Assembly: GCA_037379345.1 (NCBI GenBank)
Contig: CM074524.1
Coordinates: 3,817,635 to 3,881,634, forward strand
Length of the DNA: 64,000 bases
Reading direction: 5' to 3'
Source of the DNA: Perna viridis
Lineage: Eukaryota
Shown piece after piece: positions 13,061 through 63,239 of this stretch. Below the pieces are notes generated by a model, which saw only the letters and a program-made list of their open reading frames with translations, was not told the origin of the DNA and ran no database searches. Made by a program: the position numbers and the translations under genes. The number at the start of each line of letters is the position of its first letter. The stretch's first letter is position 1.

Positions 13061-13094
<34 letters not shown>

Positions 13095-14449: not shown

Positions 14450-14592
14450 NNNNNNNNNNNNNNNNNNNNNNNNNNNNNNNNNNNNNNNNNNNNNNNNNNN
14501 NNNNNNNNNNNNNNNNNNNNNNNNNNNNNNNNNNNNNNNNNNNNNNNNNNNNNNNNNNNNNNNNNNNNNNNNNNNNNNNNNNNNNNNNNNNN
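14450..14592. other. Assembly gap (N run)
   Basis: Run of N characters. Confidence 0.99.
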
Positions 14593-21400: not shown

Positions 21401-24400
21401 ACTTTCTCTATTTGAAAATAACACTATTTAATCTCTGCATCATTGCTTTGCCCAAAAAATTTCCAATAGAATGTTCGAAAAATTATTGACAGAATTATCT
21501 GCCATTGAAATGTTCATTTTCAGTGCATTTTAATGAAATTGTAACTCAATGGTCCAGCAAGATATGGAAAATATTGTTTGCCTTTCTGATGGTGCAAATA
21601 GTCATATTACACTATCAAAATGATGGGTTTTCTCATACCATGTTTCACCTACTGCCTGATTCTTACAGGACTGACACTTAATATGAATACTTTTTTTTTT
21701 TTAGATCAGCTCCTGTGAAATACTTCTCCAATGAGTTACCGATAAGGAACAGACTAAAACGGCTCTTTCTCAGGAACCCAACAACAAGTAAGAAAATTAT
21801 TTTCTCATGAATCCTACCACAAGTAAGAAAATCATTTTCTCAGGTATCCTACAAGAAGTAAGAAAATTCATTATTTTCTCATGAATCCTACCACAAGTAA
21901 GAAAATTGATTATTTTCTCAGGAACCCTACCACAAGTAAAAAAATTATTTTCTCATGAATCCTACCACAAGTAAGAAAATTATTTTCTCAGGTATCCTAC
22001 AAGAAGTAAGATAATTCATTATTTTCTCAGGTATCCTACAAGAAGTAAGATAATTCATTATTTTCTCAGGTATCCTACCACTAGTAAGAAAATTAATTAT
22101 TTTCTTGGGAATCCCACCACAAGTTAGACCATTCATTGTTTTCTTAAGAACTCTTCCAAAAGTAATATCATTTGTTGTTTTCCCATGAACCTTTCCACAA
22201 GTTAGATCATTTATTGTTTTTTTTCAAGATTTCTACCACAAGTTTGATCAATCAATATCTCTTTCAAAATAATTGAAGATATGGGGACTTCTTTTTTTGG
22301 CCTTGAAAGATGTTAAGTAAAAACTTTGCATTTAGAAAATTTAGCTTTTGCAGAATATGTCAAGAAACATTAAATGTGTTAAGCATGTTATATTTAACAC
22401 ACTTATTAGTCAATTTCTTTATCATTTCATTCAAACATTATGATTACAAAACAGGAAGTGAAGTGTAGTCATTTTTGTCAGGTAAAATTGGCTGGAGAAT
22501 TCAAATTGATAAAAAGTGTCTGTTTTGGAAAAAATGTACATCTTGGAAATTATTTTCTGAAGCTGAAATTGTTTTATTTGATTACTTAAGAGTATGTATA
22601 AATACTCTGTTTTTGAATGTTATTGGAAACGAATTTTTGGACAGGTCTAAGAATTTGTGAAAAAAGTGAAATAAAACAAAATTTGTAAATGAAGTTGGAT
22701 ACTGTTAAATTATTGATCTTTCTTTTAAATCAGTATCAATGATTAACATTCAGTTTAAACATGTAGGGGAAAAACAATTGTAAATTATATGGGAAATAAA
22801 AATTTATGATTACAGTTTCATTTTACATCATATAATCTTTGAAACTGACTGTGTATGCTACTATTTTCATAAGGATAAAAAATCTTCAGTGCTAACAACA
22901 CTTTGATTACCTTATTCTATATGTTAAAATCACATTGACTACACAAACATGACATAAAAGTCTAGGTAACATATTTCCTCATAAAAAATCACCAAAATGA
23001 ATTTTATTATTTATGGTATTCAGCTTGATGCATTATCTATCTTGTTTGCTATGGAAATCTTTCCTGTTATCATAATTATACATCAATAAAGTAGTGCTCC
23101 AGCTAAGAATCATGCGAAATGTGATTCATGGGTGAAAAGCCTACATATTTTTATTTTTGATGTTTTGTTTGAAATCCTGCAGTAAACAGAAATTAACATT
23201 CCGTTTTTAAGAAAACTCATGCTCTTAGGAGATAAGAATTATATAAAATGCACTGTAGATTTCAAATTTAAGGGAGATAACTCTGTAAATGACACTCAAG
23301 TACAATAGAATCTATTAGATTTTTAATGTTGATTATCTCCTAAGAGCAGACAGATTTGAATGAATAATTACACGTTTTATAATATAAGCCCATAAATCAA
23401 CACAATAACAAAAATAAAAATATGTAGCCTTTTTTAGGTGTATCACATTTTACAGAATTTGCATGATTCTTACAAAGACTACTACTTAAAACTTTGACAC
23501 TCTTCACAAATGGTTTTATTATCAAACATTCAAACTTAATCCATCTTAACCAAATCAATAACTTAGTGACTATTACACTGTAGAGTTAGTAAGGTATAAT
23601 AATACATCTGTATGTAACCATACTTTATCACCATAATGACATGGTCTATATGATAAGGGTAAATCTCTTGTGTCAGATTTATACCTATGGAGAAAAATTA
23701 CATCAAGAATTAAGTAGCTGTCTTTGTAAGAATCAAACAATATCTAAAAAATGTGATACACCCCAAAAAAGGCTACATATTGTTATTTTTGTAATTAAGT
23801 TGTTTTATGGGTTTATATTATGAAATGTGTTATTCATTCAAATCTGTCTGCTCTTAGGAGATAATCAACATTGAAAATCCAATAGATTCTATTGTATTTG
23901 AGTGTCAATAACAGAGTTACTGCCCTTAATTTCGAAATTTACAATGCATTTTATATAATTTTTATCTCCTAAGGGCATAGTTATATGAAAAACTGAATGT
24001 TAATTTCTATTTACTATGGCAATTCAAACAAAATATCAAAAATAAAAATATGTAGGCTTTTCACCCATGAATCACGATTTGTATAATTCTTAGCTGGAGC
24101 ACTACTTAAATGGCCTTTTAACATATTGTAATCTACTTCATTGGGTTATCTTTGTAATATTTAATATTACTCCTACTCCATATGTTTTTTTTGTATATAT
24201 AACTTTAAAATCATTATAGAAAAAAGTGTAAAAGAGAGGAATATATATGTATATGTCAAAAAGACAATGACAACAGTGGCAATGCTACAAAACAGTAGAA
24301 AAACATCAGTCGATGGGTCTACAATAAATGTTATTCAAGATCAGATTAATGGTGTAATATGCTGCATGAGTATTAAAAAATTAATGTCATTACGAACTTT

Positions 24401-27400
24401 AAAAGATTATGATATTTACTCATAGCTTTGTTTAAGCTTTAAAAAGTTGAGGTCAACTGAGGTCATGCAGATGGCAAAAATATTAGAGAAATTGCAAATC
24501 ATGGAGGCAAAAGGGACAGAAATTCAAATTGATAATTTCAAAAAAATATTTAGAATGAGGCATATTTATTGAGATGTCTTACATGTTCCGAGACGTACAT
24601 GCAGTTCCAACCTTTTTTTTTTAATAGTCATGATAAACCAGAAAAAAATTTAATCCCAAAACTTACAGTATAGTGAAATCTAGGGAGTAATACAAGAGTT
24701 TTTCTTTCGACAGGATTTGGTTTATCTAGGGAGTAATACAAGAGTTTTTCTTTAGACAGGATTTGGTTTATCTAGGGTGTAATACAAGAGTTTTTCTTTA
24801 GACAGGATTTGGTTCATCTAGGGAGTAATACAAGAGTTTTTCTTTAGACAGGATTTGGTTCATCTAGGGTGTAATACAAGAGTTTTTCTTTCAACAGCAT
24901 TTGGTTCATCTAGGGTGTAATGCAAGAGTTTTTCTTTCAACAGCATTTGGTTTATCTAGGGTGTAATACAAGAGTTTTTCTTTAGACAGGATTTGGTTTA
25001 TCTAGGAAGTAATACATTGAGTTTTTAAAGTAACGATAAACAATTCCTGTATGTGTATAATTTTAATGAAATTTATTTTGTTTTTAGGATTAGGCAGTAG
25101 AATATTTGACCTGGTAGTGAAATTCCTGATATGCCTTTTGTATGTTATCCGTGTGGAATTGGATGATGTTCAAAGTTATGCTTGGTGAGTTACATAATGT
25201 TTAGTTGTACCAGGTGCCATAAAACTGCCAAAGACAAGTATTCAAACAGAAGTTTAAAAAGCAAATCAAATCTCTCGTCATTAAAACAGTGTTCTCGGCA
25301 TGAGTGATCGTCTTTTTGGTTATTCACAATAAACAATTGCTTATCCTAGTTATTATATAGATTTTCTTCATGATTTATCGATATTTTCAATATGAATTTT
25401 TAATTCTGTGATTGACGTATTGATATCAAAGTTGTGACGTTTTGGTGGGAGAAAGAGCCGAGTGAAATTACTGATTTTATTTCATTGTGAATTATCAAAA
25501 TTTATTACACTGGGAACATTCGATAAAACACTACTATCTATATAATAGTAATAAATATATAGGTGGTTATTTTGATGAGGTTTTTATATATTATTTAGTT
25601 GAGTAATTATGACCCAAGATTATTTTTTACAATTGTTTTGTCCATAACTTTGTTTCTCTGTACCTTGACAACATCATATCTGGCAGTAATTTTCTTCCTT
25701 AAATATTTTACCCCAAGAAGAAAGATTATTATATATCAGAAATAGCACTAGAGTGCCAAGAATTCATATTTGGAGACACTTTTTCTACTTGCTATATATT
25801 TTTAAAAAAGAACTTCTGGGTGTTTTGGATAATAAACAGAAAGAAATAATTTACCCAAATGAAATCACAAATATCTTGGAGTATGTAAATAATGCATGAC
25901 ACAGGCTTTCTCGCCACAAGAAATTTCTGACAAGAAGTAGAGTATTCACATTGTATTGATAATTGAAGATTTTTTTTCTCTGTTTCAGTCAGGGACAAGA
26001 CTGTAAAGCTCACAATTTATCCCTACCAACAGACAGTGACCAGATGAAATTCTCATCAAATGCTATCAACTGGTATGTAGCAAAGTAACAGAAAATGGGG
26101 TTATCAACTGGTATCAAGTGGTATATGTTGTAGTTACAAAAAAGGGGGAGAGTCCCAACTGGTACATGTATGGGGTATTGTGGGAAAAGTGGGAGGGTTA
26201 ACAATTGGTAAAATGTATTGGGTATTGTTTCAAGAAAAGTGGGAGGTTTATCAACTGGTACATGTATTGGGTATTGTCACAAGAAAAGGGGAGGGTTATC
26301 AACTGGTACATGTATGGGGTATTGTCACAAGAAAAGGGGAGGGTTATCAACTGGTACATGTATGGGGTATTGTCACAAGAAAAGGGGAGGGTTATCAACT
26401 GGTACATGTATGGGGTATTGTTACAAGAAAAGGGGGAGAGTACCAACTGGTACATGTATGGGGTATTGTTACAAGAAAAGGGGGAGAGTACCAACTGGTA
26501 CATGTATGGGGTATTGTTACAAGAAAAGTGGGAGAGTACCAACTGGTACATGTATGGGGTATTGTTACAAGAAATGTGGGAGGGTTATCAACTGGTATGT
26601 GGTATAGGTTTTCACCAGATTAATATTATTTTGTAGACTTACTGTGATTGTAATCTGCAGTATATCACGCCTAAATATATTTTTTTGTCTGTTGATGGAT
26701 TTTCTTCGATTTCTCAAAGCAAATATAAAGGTAAACATATGTTCTTTGAAATGTGTAAAACTAGCAGGTTAATGGGAACATCAGTGCAGAGTTGGTGCTT
26801 GACTGACAATTACTATATTGATTGTACATATATAATGTTTCCTTTTTTTAATATTACTATGAATTCTCAAGTAGCTCTGTACTGGTTGCTGTAGGTATGT
26901 GATTATATGGGTACAGAGACCTCTGGCTCAATGGATACTACAAGTCTTCTTCTCAGTCATAACACTAGTCAAAGCATGCTTGGAGCTATATATAGGATCC
27001 AAGGTGAGTGCTTTAGGAGGTAGACCTTGGGTAAGGGACACAACTCTTAAAAATCATTGGAACGTTTGTATTCAGCATTTTACATCAATCTCAAGCATCA
27101 AATTAACTTGGATTGATTTCATTCTTTTTCAAATTGAAACTTGATAGGCTTTGATGAAATTGAATATGATACAAACATGTAACTGATTTCAAGAGTTGTT
27201 TCCCTTTCCTTTTGTCTACCTCCTTAACTCCTATTCAAGGCATGATTTTGACTGGAAATTTACATATGGCATAAGGTGGCAACAAAAAATATTGGTATGG
27301 TGCTAGCCATACCTCTCATACCTGCTGCTAGGTCCCTGTTTAATGTTGGTTCAGGATTATTAAGTTTTTTTAAAAGATTTTTACATTTTTAAGGTAGAAT

Positions 27401-30400
27401 CATAGATAGTGAGAATAAAGGACTAATAACCAGTTTCTATAAGGATGTGGTAAATCTGTCGCTGTTAGTTAATTTTGTAATGATTTTCGACATTTTATAG
27501 CATGTACTGAGTCATAAAGAAAATCTGAAACTAAATTAGTTTTCCAATTCATCTGCCTAAAAGTCAAAGGTCTTTGTTAAACAGCTTGAGAGCACTTGAG
27601 TTGTGACAAAATTCTTTGTTCACTTGTCTTCATAATAAGCAAACAGTTTAACTATTACTGTTCACTACTACAACTGCACTGACTGTTGGTCATGAGTTAT
27701 TCATATTCTCTCCATGCCATGCCAAAAAATATTCAAATACTATATATATGTATTTGTATATATTTGTATACTATTTATTATATTAATGTTTCATGCTGAT
27801 GATATTTTTTTACAGGGCATCTGTATTACAAAGATGACAGGTGATGGATTCATTTTAGAATTAGTTTGTTCTGTACCAATCATTGCCACGGTAAGTTGAA
27901 TCATAATATACTGATCGGCCAACATCCTTTATTACATCTGCATAATATATAGATTGGCCAACACCATTTCTTACATCTTCATTATATACAGATTGGCCAC
28001 AAAAATTTATTACATCTGCATAATATACAGATTGGCCAACATCATTTATTACGTCTGCATAATGTACAGATTGGCCAGCATTATTTATCACATCTGCCCA
28101 ATATACTGGTTGGCCAATATCATTTATTACATCAGCATAATATAAAACCATGTTGAATATTTCTAATTTCATGTTCTGGAAAATGAAAATGAAGTTAGTT
28201 GTGTCTGTTTACTTGTTGTCCCCCAATATGACATGACAGAGTGACATAGTGATGGTAAACATCTGTCTGTTTATTTGTTGTCCTGCAATGTGACATGACA
28301 GAGGCACATAGTGATGATATTACAACTGTCTGTTTATTTGTTGTCTTGCAATGTGACAAGACAGAGGGACATAGTGATGGTATATATCTGTCAGTTTATT
28401 TGTTGTCCCCCAATGTGACAAGACAGAGGTACATAGTGATGGTGTATATCTGTCAGTTTATTTGTTGTCTCCCAATGTGACAAGACAGAGGACATAGTGA
28501 TGGTATATGTCTGTTTATTTGCTGTCCCCCAATGTGACAAGAAAGAGGGACATAGTGATGGTATATATCTGTCTGTTTATTTGTTGTTCCCCAATGTGAC
28601 ATGGCAGAGGGACATAGTGATGGTATATACATTTTGTATCTGTCTGTTTATTTGCAACACTTGAAGTAAAGGACTTGGATATATTTTAATATTTCTCAAT
28701 GCTAGAACCCTTGTAGGTATATCTCCTCGGAAACCTCTGGCTGATTGCTTCCATATTTGGTAGGATATATTGTGACAAATTATTGATGTTCTTGCTATAA
28801 TATCATTTTAATTCATCAAATTTGTAGGAGTAATGGGACTTTGGCATCTTCAAATTTCATCAGTTACAAGTGACATATGACTATGTGACGTAGTAGTATT
28901 TTTATTACATTCCATGTCTTCAAAGCTATGAAATGATGCTAATTCTTTGTATTTTAGGCGTGTTATCCACCGTTACTAAAGGATCTTTTTGCTCCTTGTT
29001 TTCTACACTGCTGGTTGATGAGAAGATCTTTACAGAAATTATTTGTATGATTTTTGTTCTTGATCCTTTATAAGTTCTGAATGACTTGCTGTCTATGTTT
29101 GTCACATTTGATACACAGGCATAAAGCCAAGTAAATCTTTAAGTTTTTCATAGCTACATTATTTAGTAACATTATAATAACAGCCAATCATTTATGATTA
29201 TCAATATCTATTTATTTGGCAATCAGAACATTTGTGTTGTTTTTTTTCATTATGAATTTATTGTTTTGAATATAATGTTGAAAATACAAACACTGATCAT
29301 TCATTGGGTACAATCTTGCACAAACCTTTAGATTAACTGTTATTGCCTTTAATATCGGTACATCTCAGCTTGTGTTTTGTTTCACTTATAGCATGACCTA
29401 CATTTGACAAAGCAGAGATTTCAGACCATATCAGTCACTCTGTCACAACAGATGTTGATTTTAGTTGTTACTTTAGCATGTTTCATATTTACCACGTAAG
29501 TACTAAATGAATAATTTGTAGATTTAATGGAAGAGACTTCTGATCAGAGTTCCGATATTTTCTTCTTGTCCATGCTTTTTAGTTCACTTGTTGTCTCTGA
29601 ATTTACATGGAAGCTTTCTGATCCTATTCCTGTCCATATGTAACCTTTGATTGCATTGAAGGTATTAATTAAACTTTCACAGACTGAGAGTTTAGTGAAT
29701 AGACTATGATTGATTTCAAGGTCAGTTAGACAAAGGTCAAAAGTTCCCGAATACTAAATTTAGAATTTTCGATGACGTCCCCCATTTTTTTTTTGTGTGT
29801 GATGGCTTATATGATTGGCCAGCAAATCAAAGGTTAAGGTCACCATCTAGTATTAGTAAACAAATTTAAAGTAGAAAAATATCTTCCTTCCACTTGTTAA
29901 ACCATTATTTTACTGAACCTTGCACAAGTAAAAGCTTAAGTGTCAAGGACAACATTTTGAGGTCTAGATCAAAGTTCAGGGACAACTTTTACAAATAGAA
30001 TTTCCTCTACTTTGTTTGTCCCTTTCTTTGGTAGAGTAATCGAGGGAACCTGGATTCTAGTGGAAATCAAAAGAATGTAATCCAGGGACAAAGACCAGAC
30101 ATGGAAAATAGACACACACAACATAGAACATAAAATAACCAAAATAATACACACAAAGTAACAAAAGCAAATGAACAACTCAGACTCCACTAAAAACTGG
30201 GAGCATAGACCAGGTGCACTGGTAAGGTAAGGGCTCTCTGCTTTTCTAGAAACACCTGCTGAGTTGCTCATAAAAGTCCAATTCAAGGTAGACAAGAGGA
30301 AAGGATAACTATGACACGTTGACAAATCAGTTTTCATGGTGAAGATGGATATACCATAACAATCCACAAGTTTATGATAACCACAAAACTTCTGTAAGAT

Positions 30401-54400: not shown

Positions 54401-57400
54401 TTACAGATAGAGGTCTACTGTAGAAGCCAAATATGTTCAGAATAACAAGTTCTACTAGAAAAGTATAGGTTTTTATTCAGCATTTTCAAAACTGTAGGAG
54501 TTATGGCCAAAAAACTGATTTTTTATGCTATTTTGATAGGAACTGTCAATTTTTTCCATTTGTTTCAAATAAAAATACATAGAAACCACATATATTCTTG
54601 ATCAGGAGCATAAATGCTATCTAAAAATACCAAGGTCAAAGGTCAAAAGTCAAGGTCATTTGTTTTAATGGTGAAAAACTGGGTCAAAAATTATTTTTTG
54701 CCATTTTTGCCAATATGGTTCAAGATAGACAACTCAAACTACTTCCAATCAATTTAGAAGCATGGTTCCACATCTAATGATATGCCACAATGCATACTTC
54801 AGGTCAAATTTGACGATTTTCAGAAATTGGTGAAAATACACCGATTCACAACATTTTCAAAAATTGCATTTTTTTTGTCGTATTGACTCCAGGATACCAT
54901 ATTTTCCTTCGAGTAACCAATATAAGCCCTTTTCGACAAATTTTTTTAAGGTTTTTCCCATTTCGATGGGAAGACCTTCTTGTATTTCTTCTGATTATTA
55001 TTTTTTTTTTTTTTCCACCAGGCATTTTGCCAAAGTTTTGGCTGAACGTATCACGACAAGATTTTGACAATCTTTTGCAATCTGACAGGGGACTTTGGAA
55101 TTCACCCTGTGAGACATGATCTTTTGTCGGTCCAGAGTTATCTGCCCCATAGCGGAAAAACTAATTTTGCTAAAATTTCTGAAACTGTTTTAGATACACA
55201 CAAACTGAAAGCTCCATATTTTTTAGAAACCCAGGGCAGTACCATTTGACAAAGTTTCCAAAAGATTTGAGATTTCCCTGGTTATGCGATTTCGCGACCT
55301 AAAATGAAATTGTTCGGTTGGTCACTAAACTTTTAAACCGTAAGTCGTATAGACTTGGGACCTTCACTGTTGATCTTAAATGATTTGCAGTATGTTTTTG
55401 TATTTTTTGGTTCTTAGTCCAACTTTGACAAGATATTTTACCTCATTTGTATGGTCATTTCTGAATCTCTATGAGGCACTTTTTTGCTGTAGTTTTTTTC
55501 TTTAAGTCTTTATTGTATGAGTTATAACTACTGGTAACACGGTATTTACTGTCTAAATATGTATCTATATAGGAAAATTCTCCACCGAAATTTAGAACTA
55601 TATTCGTATACAACCAATTCCTATAGTGGTGTCTTTGTCGGTTTTGGTTATTGAAAATCACCTCTCTCTTTGAAAATTGGTGCACACATTGAAAACAACA
55701 GTACTTACCGTAATTAATGCATTTTTTTAATAAAATAATCTAAAAAATGCATCTGGATAAAGACAATAAGTAAATAATATTAATACATGCGTGAATGTTA
55801 GTTTCTGAAAACTGTCTTTAAAAGTATACTTCCAATACATTTTTCAAAAAGTGGCTTGGACCTAAATCGGGATGTCCAGCTTTTTATCAGTAAAAAACCA
55901 CTATTTAAGATCTTTAAATGCAAAACAACCCCATGTATGGCCTAACATTTAAACAACAGCATAGCGAGAATATCACGATAAATAAACATGTATTAATTAT
56001 TTTCAATTGTCATTAAATTAGGAAAATCAGAGTACTCATGTACTGAATCAATTTACATTGACTCTTTTAGTTGCCTTAAACAGAGACCGACTTCTTGGTT
56101 ATCAAAATATTTAAACAGTTATTGTACAGTAATTTTGTAAAGTCACTTTGTTCTGACATTGTTGTTCCAACTTACACAATGGAGGCACATTATTCACACT
56201 TATACACAATACTCATACTTTTGTAGAGACTTAAAAGTACGAATTTAGGGTTTACAATGTGAGTTTTATTTTGACCACATTTGTTCAATACATACTCAAA
56301 TAATACCTTTACAATGGATAATTCTATGTTAAGTGTGTTTTAGTACTTCATAGAGGAGTGGCCATTTGACCTGGAAGTGACAATTGAGACCTTTTGCTTT
56401 GAAATACTTTATAATTATCTCCCTTTGAATTTATCTATTTTCATGAAAGTCACAAGTTCATTTTGTTCTCAACTAATTGTATTGATGAAATTGACAGGAA
56501 AAATAGTTTATTACAACACAGTTACTACAGAATTCATCTTTCTTATAAGAATCAGAACTATTTTGAAATTTTAACAATTGTCAAAAACCTCGCCTTTTAA
56601 ATATACACAAGAAATAAATACTGTCGATCGAGCTATTCTACAAGCTAGAACACAATAAGCCATTAGTTGTGAGGTAAAGGTCATTTCCCATGAACATGAC
56701 AGTTGTCGGGAATTGGTGGGAAAGACCTTTCAATTGTTCTGGAACAATTGACCTTTTAATTTATCAGTACCTTTGTAAGAAGGTAGCTGTGTTTTGTTTT
56801 AACTTATGATGTTATAGCTTCTATATTTAGTCCTCATTTAGTGATAGATTTAGAAACTTAACAGTGCTTGGCTGATAGGCTGCTCGGTGTTAATAGATAG
56901 AAGTACTGTATAAACAAAGTATTGTTTGAATTAGGAATTATTTTGGAATTAAGAAAATAACCAAAAATAAATGTATGAAACTAACCCTAACTAAGGGGGT
57001 TAGTCATGCCAGCATGGCTAATGGGTAGGTTTAGTAGGATATCAAAAGTCAAGAAAACTTACTAACCCCTCTTCTTAATGATGGCATGACTAACCCTGTT
57101 AAGTAGGGGTAAGTTTTAAAAAAATATTTTTTTCACTTATTTTCTTAAATCCAAAATAATTCCAAATAATACCTAGTTTATAATGATCATAATTAGGGAT
57201 AAATAAAAAGAGGCAGTCGTCCTATAGTGATTTCTCTGTCTGTCCTTTCTTCCGTTACAAATTCATGTCTTGGCTGTAACTATTTGTCTTTTGATGTGGG
57301 TTTGATATCTTGCATGTGTGTAGATGACCTAAAAACAATGTGTCGCGTTCCATGGATAGTGGCATATGACCTTGAATATTAACCTCAATGTCAAATTCCT

Positions 57401-60400
57401 GTTTTTTCAGTGACAAACTGGTGTCCAGACTGTAATTTGTTTGTCTTTTGATGTAGGCTTTTGATATTTGGCATGTGGGAAGATCATCTAAATATGATGT
57501 GTCACCAACTATGGTTGGTGACCTTTGACCTTACCTATTGTATTTTGCACAACTGTTTATGTGTTGACTGTAATGACTTTTGCATGATTAATTGAATTTG
57601 CTAAGCATGGCTAATGTAGAGGATTTTTACTTCAAGGAACCCACCGAGATGGATTCCATCTCAATGATATCTAGTTATACATGTGGTGAATGTAAAGTAT
57701 GCATGGCTTATTTACCAGCTGTACAAGTTTTATTGTTTATTTGGTTTTGTCAGATGTTTTAACTTACATTGATGATATTCGTACTATCAAAAAATCTGTA
57801 TGAACCATAATACTATCATCGAACCACATACAGAATGACTGTAGCAACAGTTACACTCTCAGTGAATCACGAACAGAATCAGTACGAACCATAATACTGT
57901 CACCGAATCTGATATACAATACTATTTGTTGAGCAAGGATTAGAAAGTGAAGGATTTAATGATTTGTCTGAAAGTAAAAACACAATAATGAATAACTCTA
58001 ATTACTTTAACAGGATGGGAAAGACAGTGGATCCAACAACCAGTCATTCAGAAAAAAATGTGTCCGACCATCATTTCCAAAACAACCATTCCTTGGGAAA
58101 GATACTGAACATTCTGACATAGGAGATCTCATCAGAAATCGTCTTAAAAACCTTGGATTAAATCCTAATGATTACAGTTAGTTTGATTATATTTCGTTTT
58201 TAAAGCTAACAAAAACTTACAATAAAGACAAATGCTAATTCTTTCTTTAAAAAATAATACCAGAAATAAAAATTCCTTGAATTTAAGTATTTTTAAGTTT
58301 CTATGAATCTTATGTATGGGATAATAAATAATGAACGTTTCTAAATAAGTACACAAGAGATGCATGGTTTCACAAATTTTGTTTTATAGTAACCTTAAAA
58401 TTCATATTTTGTTAAGTGCAAAACACTAGTTCTTAGTGATTTTTATAACAGAGTAGAAATTTCTTATTAAGTACCAGTTCAGATAAAATTCAGACACTGC
58501 CTATTGTAAGGTGATTCATGGTGTAGAAAAACTCATGGATTAGTCAACAGTTGTTTGGTCTACATATGCTATATTTTAATGTGTCTTTTCTGTATTTTGA
58601 TCTGTTCTTTTAAGACAACTACACTTTAACCTCCCACTATAATCAACCAAATCAAACCAAATCAAGAACCATAACTCTTGCAAATTGCTAACTTCATGCA
58701 CAGTATATATAAATTTTATCTCAAAAGCACAACCCCTAAAAGGAAAACATGGTCTGATTTTGTGATCTATAACAGTTTCTGAACAAGAAATTAAAACTGA
58801 ATTCGGTGGGTTTTTGACATGCATGAATTGCCTCCTGTCTGATTTTTATAAAGACTGCTACTTAAATAGAGCAAGATATTATTTGTTATACTTTTCTAGC
58901 TCCAGATGAAGTACAGGATGTGATATCATATGTTATACTGAACCCCACACCAAAGAGAAAACTCAGACTGGGAGATATAGTGTAAGTACAGGATGTGATA
59001 TCATATGTTATACTGAACCCCAAACCAAAGAGAAAACTCAGACTGGGAGATATAGTGTAAGTACAGGATGTGATATATGTTATACTGAACCCTACACCAA
59101 AGAGAAAACTCAGACTGGGAGATATAGTGTAAGTACAGGATGTGTTATCATAAGTTATACTGAACCCCACACCAAAGAGAAAACTCAGACTGGGAGATAT
59201 AGTGTAAGTACAGGATGTGTTATCATATGTTATACTGAACACCACACCAAAGAGAAAACTCAGACTGGGAGATATAGTGTAAGTACAGGATGTGATATAT
59301 GTTATACTGAACCCTACACCAAAGAGAAAACTCAGACTGGGAGATATAGTGTAAGTACAGGATGTGTTATCATATGTTATACTAAATGCCACACCAAAGA
59401 GAAAACTCAGACTGGCAGATATAGTGTAAGTACAGGATGTGTTATATGTTATACTGAACACCACACCAAAGAGAAAACTCAGACTGGGAGATATAGTGTA
59501 AGTATAGGATGTGTTATCATATGTTATACTGAACCCCACACCAAAGAGAAAACTCAGACTGGGAGATATAGTGTAAGTACAGGATGTGTTATCATATGTT
59601 ATACTGAACCCCACACCAAAGAGAAAACTCAGACTGGGAGATATAGTGTAAGTACAGGATGTGATATATGTTATACTGAACCCCACACCAAAGAGAAAAC
59701 TGAGACTGGGAGATATAGTGTAAGTACAGGATGTGTTATCATATATTATACTGGACCCCACACCAAAGAGAAAACTGAGACTGGGAGATATAGTGTAAGT
59801 ACAGGATGTGTTATCATATGTTATACTGAACCCCACACCAAAAAGAAAACTCAGACTGGGAGATATAGTGTAAGTACAGGATGTGATATCATATGTTATA
59901 CTGAACCCCAAACCAAAGAGAAAACTGAGACTGGGAGATATAGTGTAAGTACAGGATGTGATATATGTTATACTGAACCCTACACCAAAGAGAAAACTCA
60001 GACTGGGAGATATAGTGTAAGTACAGGATGTGTTATCATAAGTTATACTGAACCCCACACCAAAGAGAAAACTCAGACTGGGAGATATAGTGTAAGTACA
60101 GGATGTGTTATCATATGTTATACTGAACACCACACCAAAGAGAAAACTCAGACTGGGAGATATAGTGTAAGTACAGGATGTGATATATGTTATACTGAAC
60201 CCTACACCAAAGAGAAAACTCAGACTGGGAGATATAGTGTAAGTACAGGATGTGTTATCATATGTTATACTAAATGCCACACCAAAGAGAAAACTCAGAC
60301 TGGCAGATATAGTGTAAGTACAGGATGTGTTATATGTTATACTGAACACCACACCAAAGAGAAAACTCAGACTGGGAGATATAGTGTAAGTATAGGATGT

Positions 60401-63239
60401 GTTATCATATGTTATACTGAACCCCACACCAAAGAGAAAACTCAGACTGGGAGATATAGTGTAAGTACAGGATGTGTTATCATATGTTATACTGAACCCC
60501 ACACCAAAGAGAAAACTCAGACTGGGAGATATAGTGTAAGTACAGGATGTGATATATGTTATACTGAACCCCACACCAAAGAGAAAACTGAGACTGGGAG
60601 ATATAGTGTAAGTACAGGATGTGTTATCATATATTATACTGGACCCCACACCAAAGAGAAAACTGAGACTGGGAGATATAGTGTAAGTACAGGATGTGTT
60701 ATCATATGTTATACTGAACCCCACACCAAAAAGAAAACTCAGACTGGGAGATATAGTGTAAGTACAGGATGTGTTATCATATGTTATACTGAACCCCACA
60801 CCAAAAAGAAAACTCAAACTGGGAGATATAGGTTACAGACCACCAATTCAACCAATGAGCATTTGGAACGTACGCAAAAATAGTCCTACGCAGAAATTAC
60901 CCCTGTTCCTCATAGTGCTGTGAAAAAAGTTCTCATTTCATTTAAAAAGTTTAAACAGTTTCTGAAAGGAAAAACATTTCTGTACATTTTATAGGTGCAT
61001 TTTGCTTCTTGTGATGTGAAGCCTAATCTCCATAATGATTTTTAAATGTACCCCTATCTTGTGAAAACACTGGGATTTCCCATGCTATTTATAGACCCTT
61101 CACTTCCGGTGACCAGTACTGCACTGCAAGTCTGCTAACCCCACATGCCATTCTGAGGATTTTGAGCTGACATATGTAGGATCATGCTGATATATAGTCA
61201 TCTGCAGGTTAAAGTTAAGGTAAAGTCCAGAGAAGCCATTGAATATTGTGAAATTAGCATAGAAGCCTATGGGAAGTGGAATTAGTGGTTTTTAGCCTAT
61301 AGTGTAAGTACAGGATGTGATGTATGTTATACTGAACCCCACACCAAAGAGAAAACTCAGACTGGGAGATATAGTGTAAGTACAGGATGTGATGTATGTT
61401 ATACTGGACCCCACACCAAAGAGAAAACTGAGACTGGGAGATATAGTGTAAGTACAGGATGTGTTATCATATGTTATACTAAATGCCACACCAAAGAGAA
61501 AACTCAGACTGGGAGATATAGTGTAAGTACAGGATGTGTTATCGTATGTTATACTAAATGCCACACCAAAGAGAAAACTCAGACTGGGAGATATAGTGTA
61601 AGTACAGGATGTGTTATCATATGTTATACTGAACCCCACACCAAAGAGAAAACTCAGACTTGGAGATATAGTGCAAGTACAGGATGTGATATATTTTATA
61701 CTGAACCCCACACCAAAGAGAAAATTCAGACTGGGAGATATAGTGTAAGTACAGGATGTGTTATCATATGTTATACTAAATACCACACCAAAGAGAAAAT
61801 TCAGACTGGGAGATATAGTGTAAGTACAGGATGTGTTATCATATGTTATACTAAATGCCACACCAAAGAGAAAACTCAAACTGGGAGATATAGTGTAAGT
61901 ACAGGATGTGTTATCATATGTTATACTGAACCCCACACCAAAGAGAAAACTCAGACTTGGAGATATAGTGCAAGTACAGGATGTGATATATTTTATACTG
62001 AACCCCACACCAAAGAGAAAATTCAGACTGGGAGATATAGTGTAAGTACAGGATGTGTTATCATATGTTATACTAAATACCACACCAAAGAGAAAACTCA
62101 GACTGGGAGATATAGTGTAAGTACAGGATGTGTTATTATATGTTATACTGAACCCCACACCAAAGAGAAAACTCAGACTGGGAGATATAGTGTAAGTACA
62201 GGATGTGATATATGTTATACTGAACCCCACACCAAAGAGAAAACTCAAACTGGGAGATATAGTGTAAGTACAGGATGTGTTATCATATGTTATACTGAAC
62301 CCCACACCAAAGAGAAAACTGAGACTGGGAGATATAGTGTAAGTACAGGATGTGTTATCATATGTTATACTGAACCCCACACCAAAGAGAAAATTCAGAC
62401 TGGGAGATATAGTGTAAGTACAGGATGTGATGGGGTATCAATATTCTGCTCACATTATTCTGGTTTTGTTGTGTTGGTTTTACAGCTTAATTGTGGCTAC
62501 TTTTTCACTTATTTGTTATTCATATAACGGTGTGCATGATATCAGACTTGACTGACATTTGTTATCACTTAACTGAAATATTTTTTTTTCTTGACCTTAA
62601 AACAACAAACTCTAGAATAAATTTAATGTACCGTGAAAGAACTTTAATTCATGGATATCCATTTTTGTGGATCAAGGAAGAAACAAAAGTTCATGGATTC
62701 TTGAATTTGTGGTTTTAATGTTTTCAGTATATACATCAATGGGAATCTTTAATTTGTTGGGTACCAGCTTTCATGGTTTGGTCTACCTACGAAAACCACA
62801 AAAATTGGTACCTTACGAACAATAGTACTTATACAGAAGTCCATGTTCTCATGGAAACAACTAGTTAATAAATAATAAAATCAAAGAAAAAATCAAAATA
62901 TGTGGTAAAGAAGAGATCTATTTTTATCATTATAGTTATGTGATACAGCCGAGTTGTATGAATGCTATCCCAAGTAAACAAGGAGGATGGAACAAAGTCA
63001 AATCAAAACTAATTAGGTCACTCAGTAATCGTGACAACCCAGGACCAAAACAAAGACTCATTTCAGAATCTGTTAAATCAACATTGCCAGAAATTCCACA
63101 TGACAATGGAATCCATTTTGAGGCTAAAACAAACAACATTAGAACAGAGACCAGTTTACCAAGGCGGCCAAGTCGGTTCACAGTTCAGACCATACCAGAT
63201 GTTCATGAGACTTTGTCCAACAAATCTACTGATGAATGA
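15411..63239 (+). CDS. KCNT: Slo2/KCNT-family (Slack/Slick-like) K+ channel, 28 coding exons, ~1192 aa: join(15411-15493,21705-21787,25088-25184,25989-26072,26895-27003,27816-27890,28958-29044,29392-29495,30678-30864,32350-32514,34403-34539,35049-35112,36046-36154,36631-36739,38017-38166,38711-38919,39135-39405,40846-40951,42861-43033,43374-43445,45344-45475,47163-47274,48883-48987,49383-49466,50446-50568,58014-58176,58900-58981,62936-63239)
   Basis: Every intron is GT-AG and the phases join into one open frame of 3579 nt. It contains hallmark KCNT motifs in order: [83 protein letters not shown]. Orthology to KCNT1 versus KCNT2 cannot be resolved from sequence alone. Confidence 0.93.
17903..18281. 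mobile_element. MITE family C copy
   Basis: TTAA|GTAGC...CTAC|TTAA plus an internal match. Confidence 0.8.
20043..20895. mobile_element. HINE-like element with ~120 bp internal tandem repeats (20390-20800)
   Basis: 5' agctcacctggcc..ggccaagtgagct hairpin and internal repeats. Confidence 0.55.
20939..21077. mobile_element. MITE family A, truncated copy
   Basis: One TIR preceded by TTAA plus an internal match. Confidence 0.8.
21305..21677. mobile_element. MITE family B (~360-450 bp, GTGT...ACAC, TTAA-flanked)
   Basis: Copies at 48059-48508 (reverse) and 52134-52490. Confidence 0.85.
21705..21787 (+). CDS. KCNT: KCNT exon 2 ([27 protein letters not shown])
   Basis: Poly-T ag acceptor and gtaaga donor. 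Resembles KCNT [21 protein letters not shown]. Confidence 0.88.
21766..22245 (+). repeat. ~35-40 bp tandem array (~12 copies) made from the exon 2 3' end and donor
   Basis: Unit ttttctcaggaacc(c/t)accacaagtaagaaaatt equals the last 22 exon nt plus gtaagaaaatt. It decays distally. Confidence 0.9.
23091..23485. mobile_element. MITE family C (~390 bp, GTAG...CTAC, TTAA-flanked)
   Basis: Copies at 1-300 (partial), 17903-18281 and 23714-24105 (inverted). Confidence 0.88.
23714..24105. mobile_element. MITE family C, inverted copy
   Basis: Reverse complement of 23091-23485, TTAA at both ends. Confidence 0.88.
24678..25016. repeat. 46 bp minisatellite, ~7 copies, ending 70 nt before exon 3
   Basis: Unit tctagggagtaatacaagagtttttctttagacaggatttggttta. 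Confidence 0.95.
25088..25184 (+). CDS. KCNT: KCNT exon 3, S1 ([26 protein letters not shown])
   Basis: ag/gtgagt boundaries. Matches the KCNT S1 CLLYIVRV motif. Confidence 0.9.
25989..26072 (+). CDS. KCNT: KCNT exon 4, S1-S2 loop ([28 protein letters not shown])
   Basis: tttcag/gtatgt boundaries, phase 2-2, ends in the conserved INW. Confidence 0.85.
26064..26600 (+). repeat. 48 bp tandem array (~11 copies) containing the exon 4 end and donor
   Basis: Core tatcaactggta recurs every ~48 bp. The last copy regenerates tatcaactg|gtatgt exactly. Confidence 0.85.
26895..27003 (+). CDS. KCNT: KCNT exon 5, S2 ([36 protein letters not shown])
   Basis: ag/gtgagt boundaries. WV.R...W..Q motif. Confidence 0.9.
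27016..27223. mobile_element. MITE family A copy, 12 nt downstream of exon 5
   Basis: Same TIR and internal sequence as 53407-53617. Confidence 0.85.
27816..27890 (+). CDS. KCNT: KCNT exon 6, S3 ([25 protein letters not shown])
   Basis: tttacag/gtaagt boundaries. F.LE...P motif. Confidence 0.88.
27902..28143. repeat. 39 bp minisatellite, ~6 copies, starting ~11 nt after exon 6
   Basis: Unit cataatatacagattggccaacatcatttattacatctg. Confidence 0.9.
28201..28654. repeat. ~60 bp minisatellite, ~7 copies
   Basis: Unit tgtctgtttatttgttgtcccccaatgtgacaagacagagggacatagtgatggtatatatc. Confidence 0.93.
28958..29044 (+). CDS. KCNT: KCNT exon 7, S4 ([29 protein letters not shown])
   Basis: ttttag/gtatga boundaries. 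Matches KCNT PPLRNLFIPVFLNCWL. Confidence 0.9.
29392..29495 (+). CDS. KCNT: KCNT exon 8, S4-S5/S5 ([34 protein letters not shown])
   Basis: ag/gtaagt boundaries, phase consistent. Confidence 0.9.
30034..30271 (-). mobile_element. ~240 bp structured interspersed repeat, copy 4 (intron 8)
   Basis: Reverse complement of 8054-8291. Confidence 0.85.
30678..30864 (+). CDS. KCNT: KCNT exon 9, pore loop and S6 (CGIQHIQR...[22 protein letters not shown]...IPRQ)
   Basis: K+ selectivity filter TVGYGD, tttcag/gtaaga boundaries. Confidence 0.97.
31370..32282. mobile_element. Non-autonomous Tc1/mariner(pogo)-type element, 913 bp
   Basis: TA|CCGTATTCTTCCGTGTATA...TATACACGGAGGAATACGG|TA. CpG-rich relative to its flanks. 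Confidence 0.88.
32350..32514 (+). CDS. KCNT: KCNT exon 10 ([19 protein letters not shown]...HVVV...[14 protein letters not shown])
   Basis: Start of RCK1, ag/gt boundaries. Confidence 0.95.
32923..33132. mobile_element. MITE family A copy (opposite orientation)
   Basis: TIRs at both ends and a 3' TTAA. Confidence 0.85.
33246..34436 (+). repeat. 48 bp tandem array (~25 copies) of the exon 11 acceptor and exon start
   Basis: Unit ctttacag|gaacatatagtartgtttgtcagttctgat..., and the last copy is the real exon start. Confidence 0.97.
34403..34539 (+). CDS. KCNT: KCNT exon 11 ([46 protein letters not shown])
   Basis: QGSALKD motif and gtaagt donor. The acceptor chosen is the last of ~25 tandem copies. 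Confidence 0.92.
35049..35112 (+). CDS. KCNT: KCNT exon 12 ([21 protein letters not shown])
   Basis: ACFIL motif, tttcag/gtaagt boundaries. Confidence 0.92.
36046..36154 (+). CDS. KCNT: KCNT exon 13 ([36 protein letters not shown])
   Basis: WAVKDFAP motif. Confidence 0.95.
36631..36739 (+). CDS. KCNT: KCNT exon 14 ([34 protein letters not shown])
   Basis: HVVC..E.KYA.LA.NC motif. Confidence 0.95.
36889..37559. mobile_element. Non-autonomous Tc1/mariner(pogo)-type element, 671 bp
   Basis: TA|CAGTCGAAC...GTTTGACTG|TA, with repeated ctcgaac subterminal motifs. Confidence 0.85.
38017..38166 (+). CDS. KCNT: KCNT exon 15 ([24 protein letters not shown]...[11 protein letters not shown])
   Basis: WQ..YGR..GN.VYHI motif. 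Confidence 0.93.
38147..38311 (+). repeat. ~70 bp degenerate triplication of the exon 15 end and donor
   Basis: acacagaag|gtatgc at 38158, 38229 and 38297, with a further remnant near 38495-38535. Confidence 0.8.
38711..38919 (+). CDS. KCNT: KCNT exon 16 (FGVCLVAV...[18 protein letters not shown]...)
   Basis: GVCL and LNPG motifs. The donor gtgcag is weak but fits the phase. Confidence 0.88.
39135..39405 (+). CDS. KCNT: KCNT exon 17, acidic RCK1-RCK2 linker
   Basis: Open 271 nt exon with gacag/gtaagt boundaries. Phases 1 and 2 fit the neighbouring exons. Confidence 0.85.
39419..39881. repeat. 58 bp minisatellite, ~8 copies, starting ~14 nt after exon 17
   Basis: Unit tatactgaccaagtcagtaccagtacttccctccactcccggctactacctctatctt. 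Confidence 0.95.
40846..40951 (+). CDS. KCNT: KCNT exon 18 ([35 protein letters not shown])
   Basis: Matches KCNT G.PP..Y.G...T.CH.L.....CCL. AAG acceptor. Confidence 0.9.
41795..42062. repeat. ~36 bp degenerate minisatellite
   Basis: Unit catttaaacccacgctggcagcgttctattatcgtt. Confidence 0.85.
42861..43033 (+). CDS. KCNT: KCNT exon 19, RCK2 start (DCEHC...[10 protein letters not shown]...PIVLLLEE)
   Basis: NF.VPLR and PIVLLL motifs. Confidence 0.95.
43374..43445 (+). CDS. KCNT: KCNT exon 20 ([23 protein letters not shown])
   Basis: FLE.IC.FPMVY motif. Confidence 0.93.
44012..44461. repeat. 43 bp minisatellite, ~10 copies
   Basis: Unit gttcatctttcatggttagtcagtacctgtatgtgtgccgggc. Confidence 0.95.
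44570..44894. mobile_element. Small TIR element (taggctgttcca/tggaacagcccta) with a nested family A MITE at 44669-44841
   Basis: Outer and inner inverted repeats are both visible. Confidence 0.7.
45344..45475 (+). CDS. KCNT: KCNT exon 21 (LDDLLLAGI...[18 protein letters not shown])
   Basis: LD.LL..GI and M.D..TIV.VQT motifs. Confidence 0.93.
45441..46843 (+). repeat. 44-46 bp tandem array (~30 copies) of the exon 21 3' end and donor
   Basis: Unit tcacagacaatagtagctgttcagacaatactcaa|gtaagactctg. Confidence 0.97.
47163..47274 (+). CDS. KCNT: KCNT exon 22 ([26 protein letters not shown]...MEK)
   Basis: TEL....N.RFMQF motif. Confidence 0.94.
48059..48508. mobile_element. MITE family B copy with an internal ~62 bp tandem duplication
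   Basis: TTAA at both ends. 48098-48221 is duplicated. Confidence 0.85.
48883..48987 (+). CDS. KCNT: KCNT exon 23 ([35 protein letters not shown])
   Basis: FRLPFA.G.VFS.SMLD.LLYQ motif. Unusual GAG acceptor. Confidence 0.92.
49383..49466 (+). CDS. KCNT: KCNT exon 24 ([28 protein letters not shown])
   Basis: FVK.Y.I...RLLLG.D motif. Confidence 0.94.
49446..49627 (+). repeat. 35 bp tandem array (5 copies) of the exon 24 end and donor
   Basis: Unit aaatctggacatctctctagt|gtaagt(t/c)c(c/t)(a/g)tct(g/a). Confidence 0.92.
50011..50353. mobile_element. MITE, 343 bp, 25 bp perfect TIR, TA target duplication
   Basis: cagcaagttgaaaatgactggttct / agaaccagtcattttcaacttgctg. Confidence 0.9.
50446..50568 (+). 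CDS. KCNT: KCNT exon 25 ([18 protein letters not shown]...[15 protein letters not shown])
   Basis: TYG.L and EIP..IYRTE motifs. Confidence 0.93.
51064..51114 (+). CDS. Possible 51 nt cassette exon ([17 protein letters not shown])
   Basis: Good ttttcag acceptor, open frame, phase 0-0 with a gtagga donor. No homology support. Confidence 0.3.
52134..52490. mobile_element. MITE family B copy
   Basis: TTAA at both ends. Matches 21305-21677. Confidence 0.85.
53407..53617. mobile_element. MITE family A (~210 bp, TIR GGAGGTAGACCTAGGG, TTAA-flanked, Kolobok-like)
   Basis: TTAA|GGAGGTAGACCTAGGG...CCCTAGGTCTACCTCC|TTAA. Other copies at 20939-21077, 27016-27223, 32923-33132 and 44669-44841. Confidence 0.88.
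53713..56752 (+). mobile_element. HINE/Helentron-like element with a duplicated 5' end (53713-54145 vs 54948-55378)
   Basis: 5' hairpin aggtctttccc..gggaagacct, a (TTA)n tract, and a 3' subterminal gggaaagacct followed by hairpin caattgttc.gaacaattg. Confidence 0.7.
56932..57173. repeat. Foldback/palindromic MITE-like sequence
   Basis: The arms ggaattattttggaattaagaaaataa...gggttagtcatgcca are mirrored by tggcatgactaaccc...ttattttcttaaatccaaaataattcc. Confidence 0.75.
58014..58176 (+). CDS. KCNT: KCNT exon 26 (DGKDSGS...[20 protein letters not shown])
   Basis: Matches KCNT ELSELVKNRMKHLGL. aacag/gttagt boundaries. Confidence 0.88.
58900..58981 (+). CDS. KCNT: KCNT exon 27 ([27 protein letters not shown])
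   Basis: Matches KCNT SYVLINP.P...L...DIV. ttttctag/gtaagt boundaries. Confidence 0.92.
58909..62431 (+). repeat. 72/75 bp tandem array (~41 copies in two blocks, 58909-60830 and 61298-62431) of nearly all of exon 27 plus its donor
   Basis: Unit aagtacaggatgtg(a/t)tatcatatgttatactgaaccccacaccaaagagaaaactcagactgggagatatagt|gt. Confidence 0.98.
60831..61297. mobile_element. 467 bp non-autonomous TIR element inserted in the exon 27 array
   Basis: Imperfect ~19 bp TIRs (ggttacagaccaccaattc / gaattagtggtttttagcc) and a TATA target duplication of the repeat unit. Confidence 0.8.
62936..63239 (+). CDS. KCNT: KCNT exon 28, terminal (YVIQPSCM...STDE*)
   Basis: Phase-2 acceptor tatag continues DIV|YVI as in KCNT DIVYLI. 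Open to TGA. Confidence 0.88.

Follow-up and report, generated by a model that had tools for sequence, protein, structure and literature searches.

The window, by which we mean the whole 64,000-nucleotide stretch of DNA analyzed here, carries a K+ channel gene whose exon model was built by exon-by-exon tblastn with the molluscan KCNT homologs P0001 (a transcript-like contig of a relative, which backs the exon model only), P0044 (Elysia), P0120 (Mya), and P0008 (Tegillarca). The searches were run per exon, and the spliced protein was never joined; positions are approximate for the E1 start and for the acceptors of E16/E17 and E20, and the end of E17 (39405) was verified by homology. One exon (30678-30864) contains a K+ pore with TVGYGD; Pfam, run on single exons, returned Ion_trans_2, Slo-like_RCK (three exons), and BK_channel_a; the best PDB matches are KCNT1 (5a6e, 5u70, and 8hir); and the closest proteins are all molluscan and KCNT1/2-like. 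By sequence, this combination of a pore, Slo-type RCK domains, and KCNT1 as the closest solved relatives identifies the predicted product as a Slo2/KCNT K+ channel. Exon boundaries fall at the same residues as when P0044 (Elysia) and P0007 (Ylistrum) are aligned to the loci that encode them, and the introns are old, since their positions are common to Elysia and Ylistrum. The exons are 40% GC and the introns 31%. An N run at 14450-14592, upstream of the gene, was left as is.

Tandem arrays were located by TRF, and each junction was then read directly; moreover, an echo scan searched the introns for an 18-nt core (10 exon and 8 intron nt) with up to four mismatches. The features of the locus, with the methods by which they were identified, are as follows:

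15306-63236, forward strand: Slo2/KCNT-type K+ channel gene, ~28 exons (tblastn, splice dinucleotides, Pfam, PDB)
21766-22220, forward strand: E2 donor array; E2 is 21705-21787 (TRF, direct reading, echo scan)
26063-26597, forward strand: E4 donor array; E4 is 25989-26072 (TRF, direct reading, echo scan)
27902-28144, forward strand: 39-bp x 6 array starting 11 nt past the donor of E6, which is 27816-27890 (TRF)
33236-34437, forward strand: E11 acceptor array; E11 is 34403-34539 (TRF, echo scan)
38156-38311, forward strand: E15 donor array; E15 is 38017-38166 (TRF, direct reading, echo scan)
39419-39874, forward strand: 58-bp x 8 array starting ~6-13 nt past the E17 donor (TRF)
45441-46844, forward strand: E21 donor array; E21 is 45344-45475 (TRF, echo scan)
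49445-49616, forward strand: E24 donor array; E24 is 49383-49466 (TRF, direct reading, echo scan)
58909-62431, forward strand: E27 donor array; E27 is 58900-58981 (TRF, direct reading, echo scan)
60832-61292, no strand assigned: insertion of ~460 bp inside one unit of the E27 array, with TATAG duplicated on both flanks

Seven junctions carry arrays whose repeated unit consists of the coding end of the adjoining exon and the splice signal next to it, namely six donors (E2, E4, E15, E21, E24, and E27) and one acceptor (E11). TRF and direct reading thus find arrays where an earlier note, made from the letters of the window, had described them, and the copy numbers given there agree with the copy counts per array set out below. 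The echo scan counted 8 at the E2 donor, 2 at E4, 2 at E15, 30 at E21, 4 at E24, 40 at E27, and 24 at the E11 acceptor. An echo scan of the other 47 junctions of the gene returned 0 copies, save one AG-less match before E23; the two-copy acceptor array claimed for that exon was rejected, being a T-rich low-complexity tract at 48780-48819.

Among the donor arrays, the E2 unit (35-39 bp) joins ~22 nt of exon end to ~13 nt of intron beginning GTAAGA, and is present in ~10-12 copies, the distal ones decaying (10 in the unit alignment, including the true site, with GT kept in 10/10). The E4 unit (38-51 bp) comprises ~9-10 nt of exon end and intron beginning GTATGT, in ~11 copies, of which the proximal ones have diverged from the bulk 48-bp unit. 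The E15 unit is 71 bp long and present in three copies, that is, the true site and two echoes (by echo scan; the unit alignment recovered two). At E21, units of 32-46 bp contain up to ~31 nt of exon end followed by GTAAGA, in ~30 copies (29 in the unit alignment, including the true site, with GT kept in 25/29), and at E24, a 35-bp unit of 21-22 nt of exon and 13-14 nt of intron is present in five copies by the same count, with GT kept in 5/5. The largest array, at E27, has a 75-bp unit that takes in nearly the whole 82-nt exon plus its donor; the unit alignment found 41 copies, including the true site (GT kept in 38/41; 93-99% identity to the true unit), and TRF counted 47 with the 460-bp insertion included. 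This array has an 888-bp (12-unit) higher-order repeat, whose blocks are 96-100% identical, and its insertion resembles a transposable element, the flanking duplication being the apparent target-site duplication. The acceptor array at E11 has a 48-bp unit of (i) a ~15-18 nt pyrimidine tract plus AG and (ii) ~30-33 nt of exon start; it holds 25 copies (unit alignment, true site counted; AG kept in 25/25), with a ~238-bp higher-order period.

All of these arrays run head-to-tail in tandem (TRF, repeat families), with strict polarity, as the earlier note had stated: in each of the six donor arrays the authentic site is the first copy, and in the E11 array it is the final one. The proposal that each array arose in place also held, in that the seven units are unrelated to one another by sequence comparison, and each carries its own exon's coding end. 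Because these exon ends are conserved in orthologs (Elysia, Mya, Tegillarca, and P0001), the exon came first and the direction is from exon to array; capture of an exon boundary from an earlier intronic array was therefore rejected. The position of the junction within the unit is widely spread (intron-derived share, y/u, 0.03 to 0.94), and an exon-biased process, in which units would be mostly exonic, was dropped on this account. Arrays make up 62-87% of the length of four introns, in line with the suggestion that they feed intron growth.

The arrays beside the E6 and E17 donors, absent from the earlier list, contain no significant exon-derived sequence (E6) and no exon-derived sequence (E17). 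An exact 63-bp x 2 repeat at 48097-48222 sits 660 nt from the nearest junction, and mid-intron arrays were rejected as displaced mirages (the term is taken up below), since none resembles any exon beyond shuffled controls. Two apparent coding features were likewise discarded: an exon at 48337-48410 falls in a dispersed repeat, and an alternative exon end inside the E27 array (60762-60872) is read-through into the element inserted there. A search for an exon or gene near two upstream arrays (6024-6505 and 9449-9646) found none, so that these arrays add nothing to the test of placement.

The placement of arrays in the gene is non-random. Arrays were collapsed to one-unit seeds and placed at random; under this null 0.84 junction-spanning arrays are expected, and the strict count was 6 (P = 1e-4). 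When E4 is added and the null is matched for GC, junction-spanning arrays number 7 out of 14, with 1.15 expected (P = 5e-5); so low an expectation led us to discard GC composition as an explanation of the excess. Arrays that either span a junction or lie within 15 nt of one number 9, against 1.36 expected (P < 1e-5). The comparison with random placement, which the earlier note had proposed genome-wide, was carried out here within one gene family, and in the window gene it yields an enrichment of 7 over 0.8-1.2 expected.

Orthologous loci, picked by homology alone, comprised those of the bivalves Tegillarca and Ylistrum and two further contigs, plus three gastropods. At the independent loci other than the gastropod ones, 10 junction-spanning arrays were observed, against 1.87 expected (P = 2.6e-5; junctions read by eye), and abutting arrays were also in excess (16 against 3.26 expected). 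The pattern proposed for comparison across orthologous introns recurs in bivalves, mostly at exons other than those of the window; the scallop ortholog does carry an array at the same junction as E21. Acceptor arrays occur at these loci too (E12 of locus L001 and E6 of Tegillarca), with a pooled donor:acceptor ratio of 15:3 (binomial ~0.0075). Intron 9 of L001 consists almost wholly of arrays beginning from the E9 donor, and arrays occupy ~99% of one intron in a relative. The same junction-array architecture was seen in five independent assemblies, and junction-spanning arrays were found in 0/3 of the gastropod orthologs examined (Elysia, Lymnaea, and Lottia). That the array-bearing junctions differ among orthologs indicates turnover between species, and this turnover is fast. 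The window represents one haplotype; between the Tegillarca haplotigs L005 and L006, copy numbers are 71.6 versus 185.7, 96.6 versus 62.7, and, at the E3 junction array, 24.9 versus 25.9. These haplotig differences, the 888-bp and ~238-bp periods, the decayed distal copies, and the transposon-like insertion all fit minisatellite dynamics.

Tandem repeats of this kind, called mirages, were noticed over 20 years ago in a few amphioxus genes and have never been explained; the original paper is reportedly that of Canestro et al. in 2002. The earlier note had suggested no named class for the arrays; the name exists, and the window arrays share its defining traits, being tandem within a gene, with units that span the exon-intron boundary, at both 5' and 3' boundaries. 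Mirage minisatellites are reported from amphioxus Adh3, troponin C (TnC), the globins BflGb6 and BflGb9, and PGBD5, regular splicing is left undisturbed (Adh3, TnC, and the globins), and the mechanism is stated to be unclear (PMC3087553, PMC3902484). Amphioxus units are 10-160 bp long, AG or GT is mostly kept (as here), array length varies between haplotypes, and units evolve in concert, with divergent edge units. The differences are that the amphioxus cases come from cephalochordates, with one or a few per gene, whereas 7 of 27 introns of a single mollusc gene are affected here, with arrays reaching 41 copies (3.5 kb) and with excess and donor bias quantified, from sequence only. A search for mirage-like arrays in molluscs within the paper collection used here found no report.

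Two further systems are comparable in part. In intron 7 of human F7, the first element of a 37-bp VNTR spans the exon 7 donor, and the pseudo-donors that follow are functional yet silent, the most upstream site being picked by 5'-to-3' scanning (PMC1557585). The likeness lies in an authentic donor followed by near-identical pseudo-donors (GT kept in 10/10, 25/29, 5/5, and 38/41 in our arrays at E2, E21, E24, and E27); that system, however, is a single mammalian locus without a counterpart to acceptor arrays, and its silence was shown by experiment, whereas ours is read from DNA. The Rogers model, in which an exon segment that contains AGGT is duplicated in tandem and an intron is thereby gained (PMC3265369, PMC4974935), likewise has splice signals within the duplication and extra material removed as intron, with the mRNA unchanged. 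It makes a new intron within an exon, whereas here an existing, old intron is lengthened; such a gain was rejected, because the introns are present at the same positions in relatives.

Turning to the possible use of the echoes, an in-frame stop lies 1-9 codons past the true donor at all six donor arrays, much as the earlier note had observed (1-11 codons there); what did not stand is its significance, as 20 non-array donors reach a stop at a median of 2.5 codons. Early stops follow every donor of this AT-rich gene and are therefore uninformative about arrays, and we rejected them as an array signature. Of the acceptor echoes, the four closest to E11 keep the reading frame and contain no stop; splicing to them would insert 16-residue blocks instead of triggering NMD and could yield real isoforms. 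Echoes retain GT or AG in 86-100% of cases, which fits the overall unit identity of 85-99%, and the signals may also be under selection. By analogy with the silent pseudo-sites of F7 and amphioxus, the echo sites are probably silent.

We consider the arrays to be junction-spanning minisatellites of the mirage type and, at a probability of roughly 65%, tolerated by-products of in-place duplication, with a bias toward junctions left over. Under this reading, a segment of 20-110 bp straddling an exon-intron boundary would be duplicated in tandem at the DNA level, each array starting independently from its own junction, and would then be enlarged and homogenized through slippage and unequal exchange, like any minisatellite. 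Splicing would use a single copy, the one still continuous with the body of its exon (in donor arrays the first, in acceptor arrays the last); the remaining copies would be intronic and removed by splicing, leaving the mRNA unchanged, so that the arrays would require no function. Their main effects would be to lengthen introns and to provide material from which new exons or splice sites may form. The excess would require a bias of origin toward splice junctions, to which the rules of splicing may add a filter, as downstream donor echoes would be ignored, whereas upstream acceptor echoes would be likelier to be used, and hence harmful.

Such a bias is needed because survival alone is insufficient. 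Were duplications to arise uniformly, exonic ones being removed and junction-spanning ones persisting as their copies fall in the intron, the strict polarity and the lack of any array within an exon would be accounted for, the donor excess would be compatible with a splicing filter, and the apparently uniform junction offsets would be expected. This account, which the earlier note had offered as one of two, predicts no enrichment, however, and we regard it as unlikely: spanning arrays (7 versus 0.8-1.2 in the window; 10 versus 1.9 at independent loci) exceed uniform or GC-matched seeding by ~6-8-fold, and abutting arrays are likewise in excess (9 versus 1.36 and 16 versus 3.26). A purely neutral model with uniform origin was accordingly rejected. 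It is similarly improbable that the arrays are kept by selection as regulatory decoys, with echoes used or bound (by U1 or U2AF) so as to adjust output via NMD, favor splicing at the true site, or prevent premature polyadenylation within introns rich in AT. Most echoes do keep their splice dinucleotides, and use of any later donor copy would run into a stop; yet signal retention is expected from the overall identity of the units, early stops follow every donor of the gene, array junctions turn over among orthologs instead of being conserved, pseudo-sites are silent in the analogous systems (PMC1557585, PMC3087553), and the E11-proximal echoes would give in-frame insertions rather than NMD. An assembly artifact, or the array-to-exon capture excluded above, is very improbable; the near-identity of the 888-bp blocks means that copy numbers at E27 could be mis-assembled, but identical architecture is found in five independent assemblies, and the units carry variants, one array even holding an insertion with a target-site duplication.

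A hotspot coupled to transcription or splicing, seeding duplications within a few tens of nt of exon boundaries, is a tentative possibility that would supply the cause of the bias in our preferred reading. It would be consistent with the excess of both spanning and abutting arrays, with arrays that halt just clear of the splice signal (6-13 nt at donors, 7 nt at an acceptor), with recurrence in several bivalves at a variety of junctions, and with the 15:3 donor bias. Candidate mechanisms, all putative, include pausing of the polymerase or R-loop formation at splice sites, template switching at stalled forks, and nucleosome-edge effects; abutting arrays may also stem from deletions that erode the spacer up to the constrained splice signal. 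Moreover, the array-free gastropod orthologs of the same gene count against a hotspot, which would have to be lineage-specific. Of the mutational process offered in the earlier note as one alternative, the bias toward junctions is supported, whereas coupling to splicing, R-loops, or RNA stays a candidate.

The present analysis finds mirage structure in bivalve molluscs, in seven introns of one gene, with an excess that is measured and replicated, which suggests that the process is general and not peculiar to lancelets; long-read genomes now make this idea testable. Bivalves, like amphioxus, may possibly have a junction-directed duplication process, perhaps coupled to transcription, splicing, or chromatin at exon edges, that seeds minisatellites time and again, is among the chief drivers of intron growth, and gives rise to new exons and splice sites. 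If so, its traces would be the donor excess and the arrays that halt a few nt short of the splice signal, and the process would bear on intron growth, on exon and splice-site duplication, and on gene annotation, as echo junctions are able to mislead gene predictors in minisatellite-rich genomes. If the arrays are only a tolerated by-product, they would still offer a natural means of studying how the spliceosome picks one of several identical sites.

The window (GC ∼33%) carries, on the + strand at ∼15.3-63.2 kb, a Slo2/KCNT-type potassium-channel gene of ∼28 exons (E1-E28). The pore exon was used in a representative search for homologs, and these served as tblastn queries to map the exons one at a time; exon boundaries were fixed from splice sites read in the sequence, and all protein searches were run exon by exon, by reference. 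Single exons matched the Pfam families Ion_trans_2, Slo-like_RCK (three exons), and BK_channel_a; KCNT1 supplied the best solved relatives of the pore exon, and the closest named proteins were molluscan and KCNT1/2-like (Elysia, Mya, Ylistrum, Tegillarca, Lottia, and Lymnaea). The DNA is accordingly molluscan, probably from a bivalve, and not human. Homology to Tegillarca confirmed the 3' end of E17 (E = 5e-10). Upstream of the gene lie the single run of N (143 nt, 14450-14592), poly-T tracts of 30-60 nt (1233-1267, 13064-13093, and 13342-13401), and two minisatellites, 6024-6505 (40 bp x 12) and 9449-9646 (30 bp x 6.6), in whose neighbourhood no exon or recognisable gene was found.

TRF detected ∼20 minisatellite arrays across the window, with 14 (at least 100 bp) within the gene. 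In seven arrays, whose junctions we read directly, the unit joins the end of the adjacent exon to that exon's splice signal, so that the adjoining intron holds extra copies, or echoes, of the junction.

Junction arrays of the + strand gene. Echoes were counted with an 18-nt junction core; copy numbers come from unit alignment, true site included.
21766-22220: E2 donor array, unit 35-39 bp, 8 echoes, 10 copies
26063-26597: E4 donor array, unit ∼48 bp, 2 echoes, ∼11 copies
33236-34437: E11 acceptor array, unit 48 bp, 24 echoes, 25 copies
38156-38311: E15 donor array, unit 71 bp, 2 echoes, 3 copies
45441-46844: E21 donor array, unit 32-46 bp, 30 echoes, 29 copies
49445-49616: E24 donor array, unit 35 bp, 4 echoes, 5 copies
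58909-62431: E27 donor array, unit 75 bp, 40 echoes, 41 copies

By unit alignment, GT or AG is retained in 86-100% of copies, and copies are 78-100% identical to the true unit. The 18-nt core scan returned 0 echoes at the other 47 junctions, except for one AG-less match 5' of E23. TRF, direct reading, and the core scan bear out the seven junction arrays among those reported in an earlier note made from the sequence alone. Its statements that the units are mutually unrelated (all seven are) and that polarity is strict also hold, the first copy always being the true donor and the last always the true acceptor. Its eighth case, an acceptor array at E23, is instead a T-rich tract, and its list lacked two arrays, which begin 11 nt past the E6 donor and ∼6-13 nt past the E17 donor. 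The residues encoded by the exon parts of the units are conserved in orthologs, which indicates that the arrays came from the exons, and not the exons from the arrays. The junction can fall at any offset within the unit, so the process favours neither the exon nor the intron side; the 75-bp E27 unit covers almost all of an 82-nt exon. Comparison of the mid-intron arrays with exons revealed no similarity.

Other repeats are also present. One dispersed family of ∼215-240 bp, likely SINE- or MITE-like, occurs in both orientations at 85-94% identity and has three copies upstream of the gene (8054-8298, 10021-10239, and 11553-11770) and one within intron 8 (30033-30271); a second, of ∼140 bp, occurs at 20932-21078, 27009-27153, 32987-33129, and 53400-53553, with one copy beginning 6 nt past the E5 donor. 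Intron 2 contains inverted-repeat pairs (23084-23367 and 23830-24112; 134-149 nt, 87-91% complementary) placed as terminal inverted repeats would be in a foldback or MITE-like element of ∼1 kb. Within intron 25 (7.4 kb), 53772-54071 and 55002-55301 are 95% identical and 1,230 bp apart; the pair reflects either a large segment duplicated in tandem or a single element present twice. GTATGT opens both intron 4 (26073-26078) and exon 5 (26895-26900), which may be a donor-consensus coincidence or a remnant of an old cross-junction duplication.

Because arrays expand in place, we rejected base coverage as a null; each array was reduced to one unit, and these seeds were dropped at uniformly random positions along the collapsed gene, which has 38.9 kb and 54 junctions, discarding those that fell entirely within an exon. 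Under this seed null, 0.84 of the 14 arrays would be expected to span a junction, versus six seen in a strict count (P = 1e-4) and seven with E4 included, while nine were spanning or at most 15 nt from a junction, versus 1.36 expected (P < 1e-5). With GC-matched seeds, the expectation was only 1.15, and the probability of seven or more was 5e-5. Junction arrays are in excess in this gene, also against GC-matched seeds, and array placement is strongly non-random.

The window had been chosen for its oddness, and we therefore sought replication at orthologous loci picked by homology alone, inspecting their junctions by eye.

Junction-spanning arrays at orthologous loci, seen versus expected.
L001 (ENA ERZ25071447 ctg83322): 5 versus 0.94
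L002 (ENA contig): 1 versus 0.25
L003 (scallop Ylistrum balloti): 1 versus 0.16
L005 (blood clam Tegillarca granosa): 3 versus 0.51

Pooled over these four loci, 10 arrays span a junction versus 1.87 expected (P = 2.6e-5), and 16 are spanning or within 15 nt versus 3.26 expected. L001 has donor arrays at E6 (20 bp x 80), E7, E8, E9, and E14 and one acceptor array, at E12; its intron 9 is ∼99% array: the E9 donor supplies a 34-bp unit, and next comes a 19-bp unit, seemingly a shorter version derived from it. Tandem array makes up 56% of L001 stretch 1-20351 (20 kb), and third codon positions in L001 exons are markedly GC-rich. L002 has an E10 donor array (39 bp x 35), and Tegillarca has arrays at the E3 donor, E6 acceptor, and E12 donor. 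Junction arrays thus recur at orthologous loci, mostly at other junctions: the scallop array, at the E21 donor, shares its junction with the window, while array-bearing junctions otherwise differ from species to species, which indicates independent origins and rapid turnover. The Elysia, Lymnaea, and Lottia orthologs contain few arrays, and no junction-spanning ones were found there. In Elysia chlorotica (L004), the E27-equivalent exon occurs twice, 1.76 kb apart (21109-21192 and 22870-22953), and its copies match the annotated protein at 96% and 100% identity; this whole-exon duplication hits the same exon that bears the window's largest array.

At 59075-60850, the E27 array holds a higher-order repeat of 888 bp (12 units, spacings 75 and 72 bp) that occurs twice with 96-100% identity, the second copy having arisen either very recently or in the assembly. 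A higher-order period of ∼238 bp is seen in the E11 array, and in the E2 and E21 arrays the copies farthest from the exon are decayed. One E27 unit is split by a ∼460-bp insertion (60832-61292) with TATAG duplicated on either side, which probably represents a short transposon and its target-site duplication; tblastn read-through into it imitates an alternative exon end. Between two Tegillarca haplotigs (L005 versus L006), copy number differs at several arrays (71.6 versus 185.7 copies of a 40-bp unit; 96.6 versus 62.7 of a 42-bp unit), in what looks like haplotype-level VNTR variation. This MINISATELLITE behaviour, comprising higher-order periods, distal decay, the insertion, and haplotig differences, argues against an assembly artefact as the source of the arrays, although exact copy numbers may be off.

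Most likely, a junction-straddling segment is duplicated in tandem, the array is amplified by slippage and unequal exchange, and splicing uses only the copy contiguous with the remainder of the exon, the other copies leaving with the intron. For donor arrays, such first-site use matches the rule shown experimentally in human F7 intron 7, where a 37-bp VNTR starts on the exon 7 donor and the pseudo-donors are functional yet silent, since scanning from 5' to 3' picks the most upstream site (PMC1557585). Across all loci together, the donor:acceptor ratio is 15:3 (two-sided binomial ∼0.0075), and this donor excess fits a splicing filter. Classically, the first AG past the branch point is the one used, so echo acceptors upstream of the true acceptor would be met first. 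Alternatively, the ratio could reflect the mutational process itself. The interpretation in the earlier note finds support in part. The note had left open whether duplications are seeded at junctions or merely survive there; survival alone, with uniform origin, is rejected on the excess of junction arrays. There is likewise an excess of arrays that end close to a splice signal without reaching it, which points to either a junction-proximal origin bias or spacer erosion up to the constrained splice signal. Rogers-type intron gain is ruled out, the introns being shared with Elysia and Ylistrum.

Early in-frame stops, to which the note had drawn attention, are indeed present past the six array donors (after 1-9 codons) but are not distinctive, since the gene's other 20 donors reach one at a median of 2.5 codons; they go with AT-rich introns, and with GTAAGT in certain phases. 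The four echo acceptors closest to E11 are in frame and open over 67 codons and, as predicted from the reading frame, would if used add 16-residue blocks to the first RCK domain, rather than lead to NMD.

While the note knew of no named class, minisatellites spanning exon-intron boundaries have been called mirages in amphioxus, later being reported in troponin C, globins, and PGBD5; they occur at both 5' and 3' boundaries, differ in length between haplotypes, and leave regular splicing undisturbed, while the mechanism behind them was described as unclear (PMC3087553, PMC3902484). The window's arrays share the structural features of mirages. Full-text search of a limited literature collection found no mollusc report of such arrays. 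The arrays bring a new taxon to a kind of repeat that is known but unexplained, and they do so at unusually high density.
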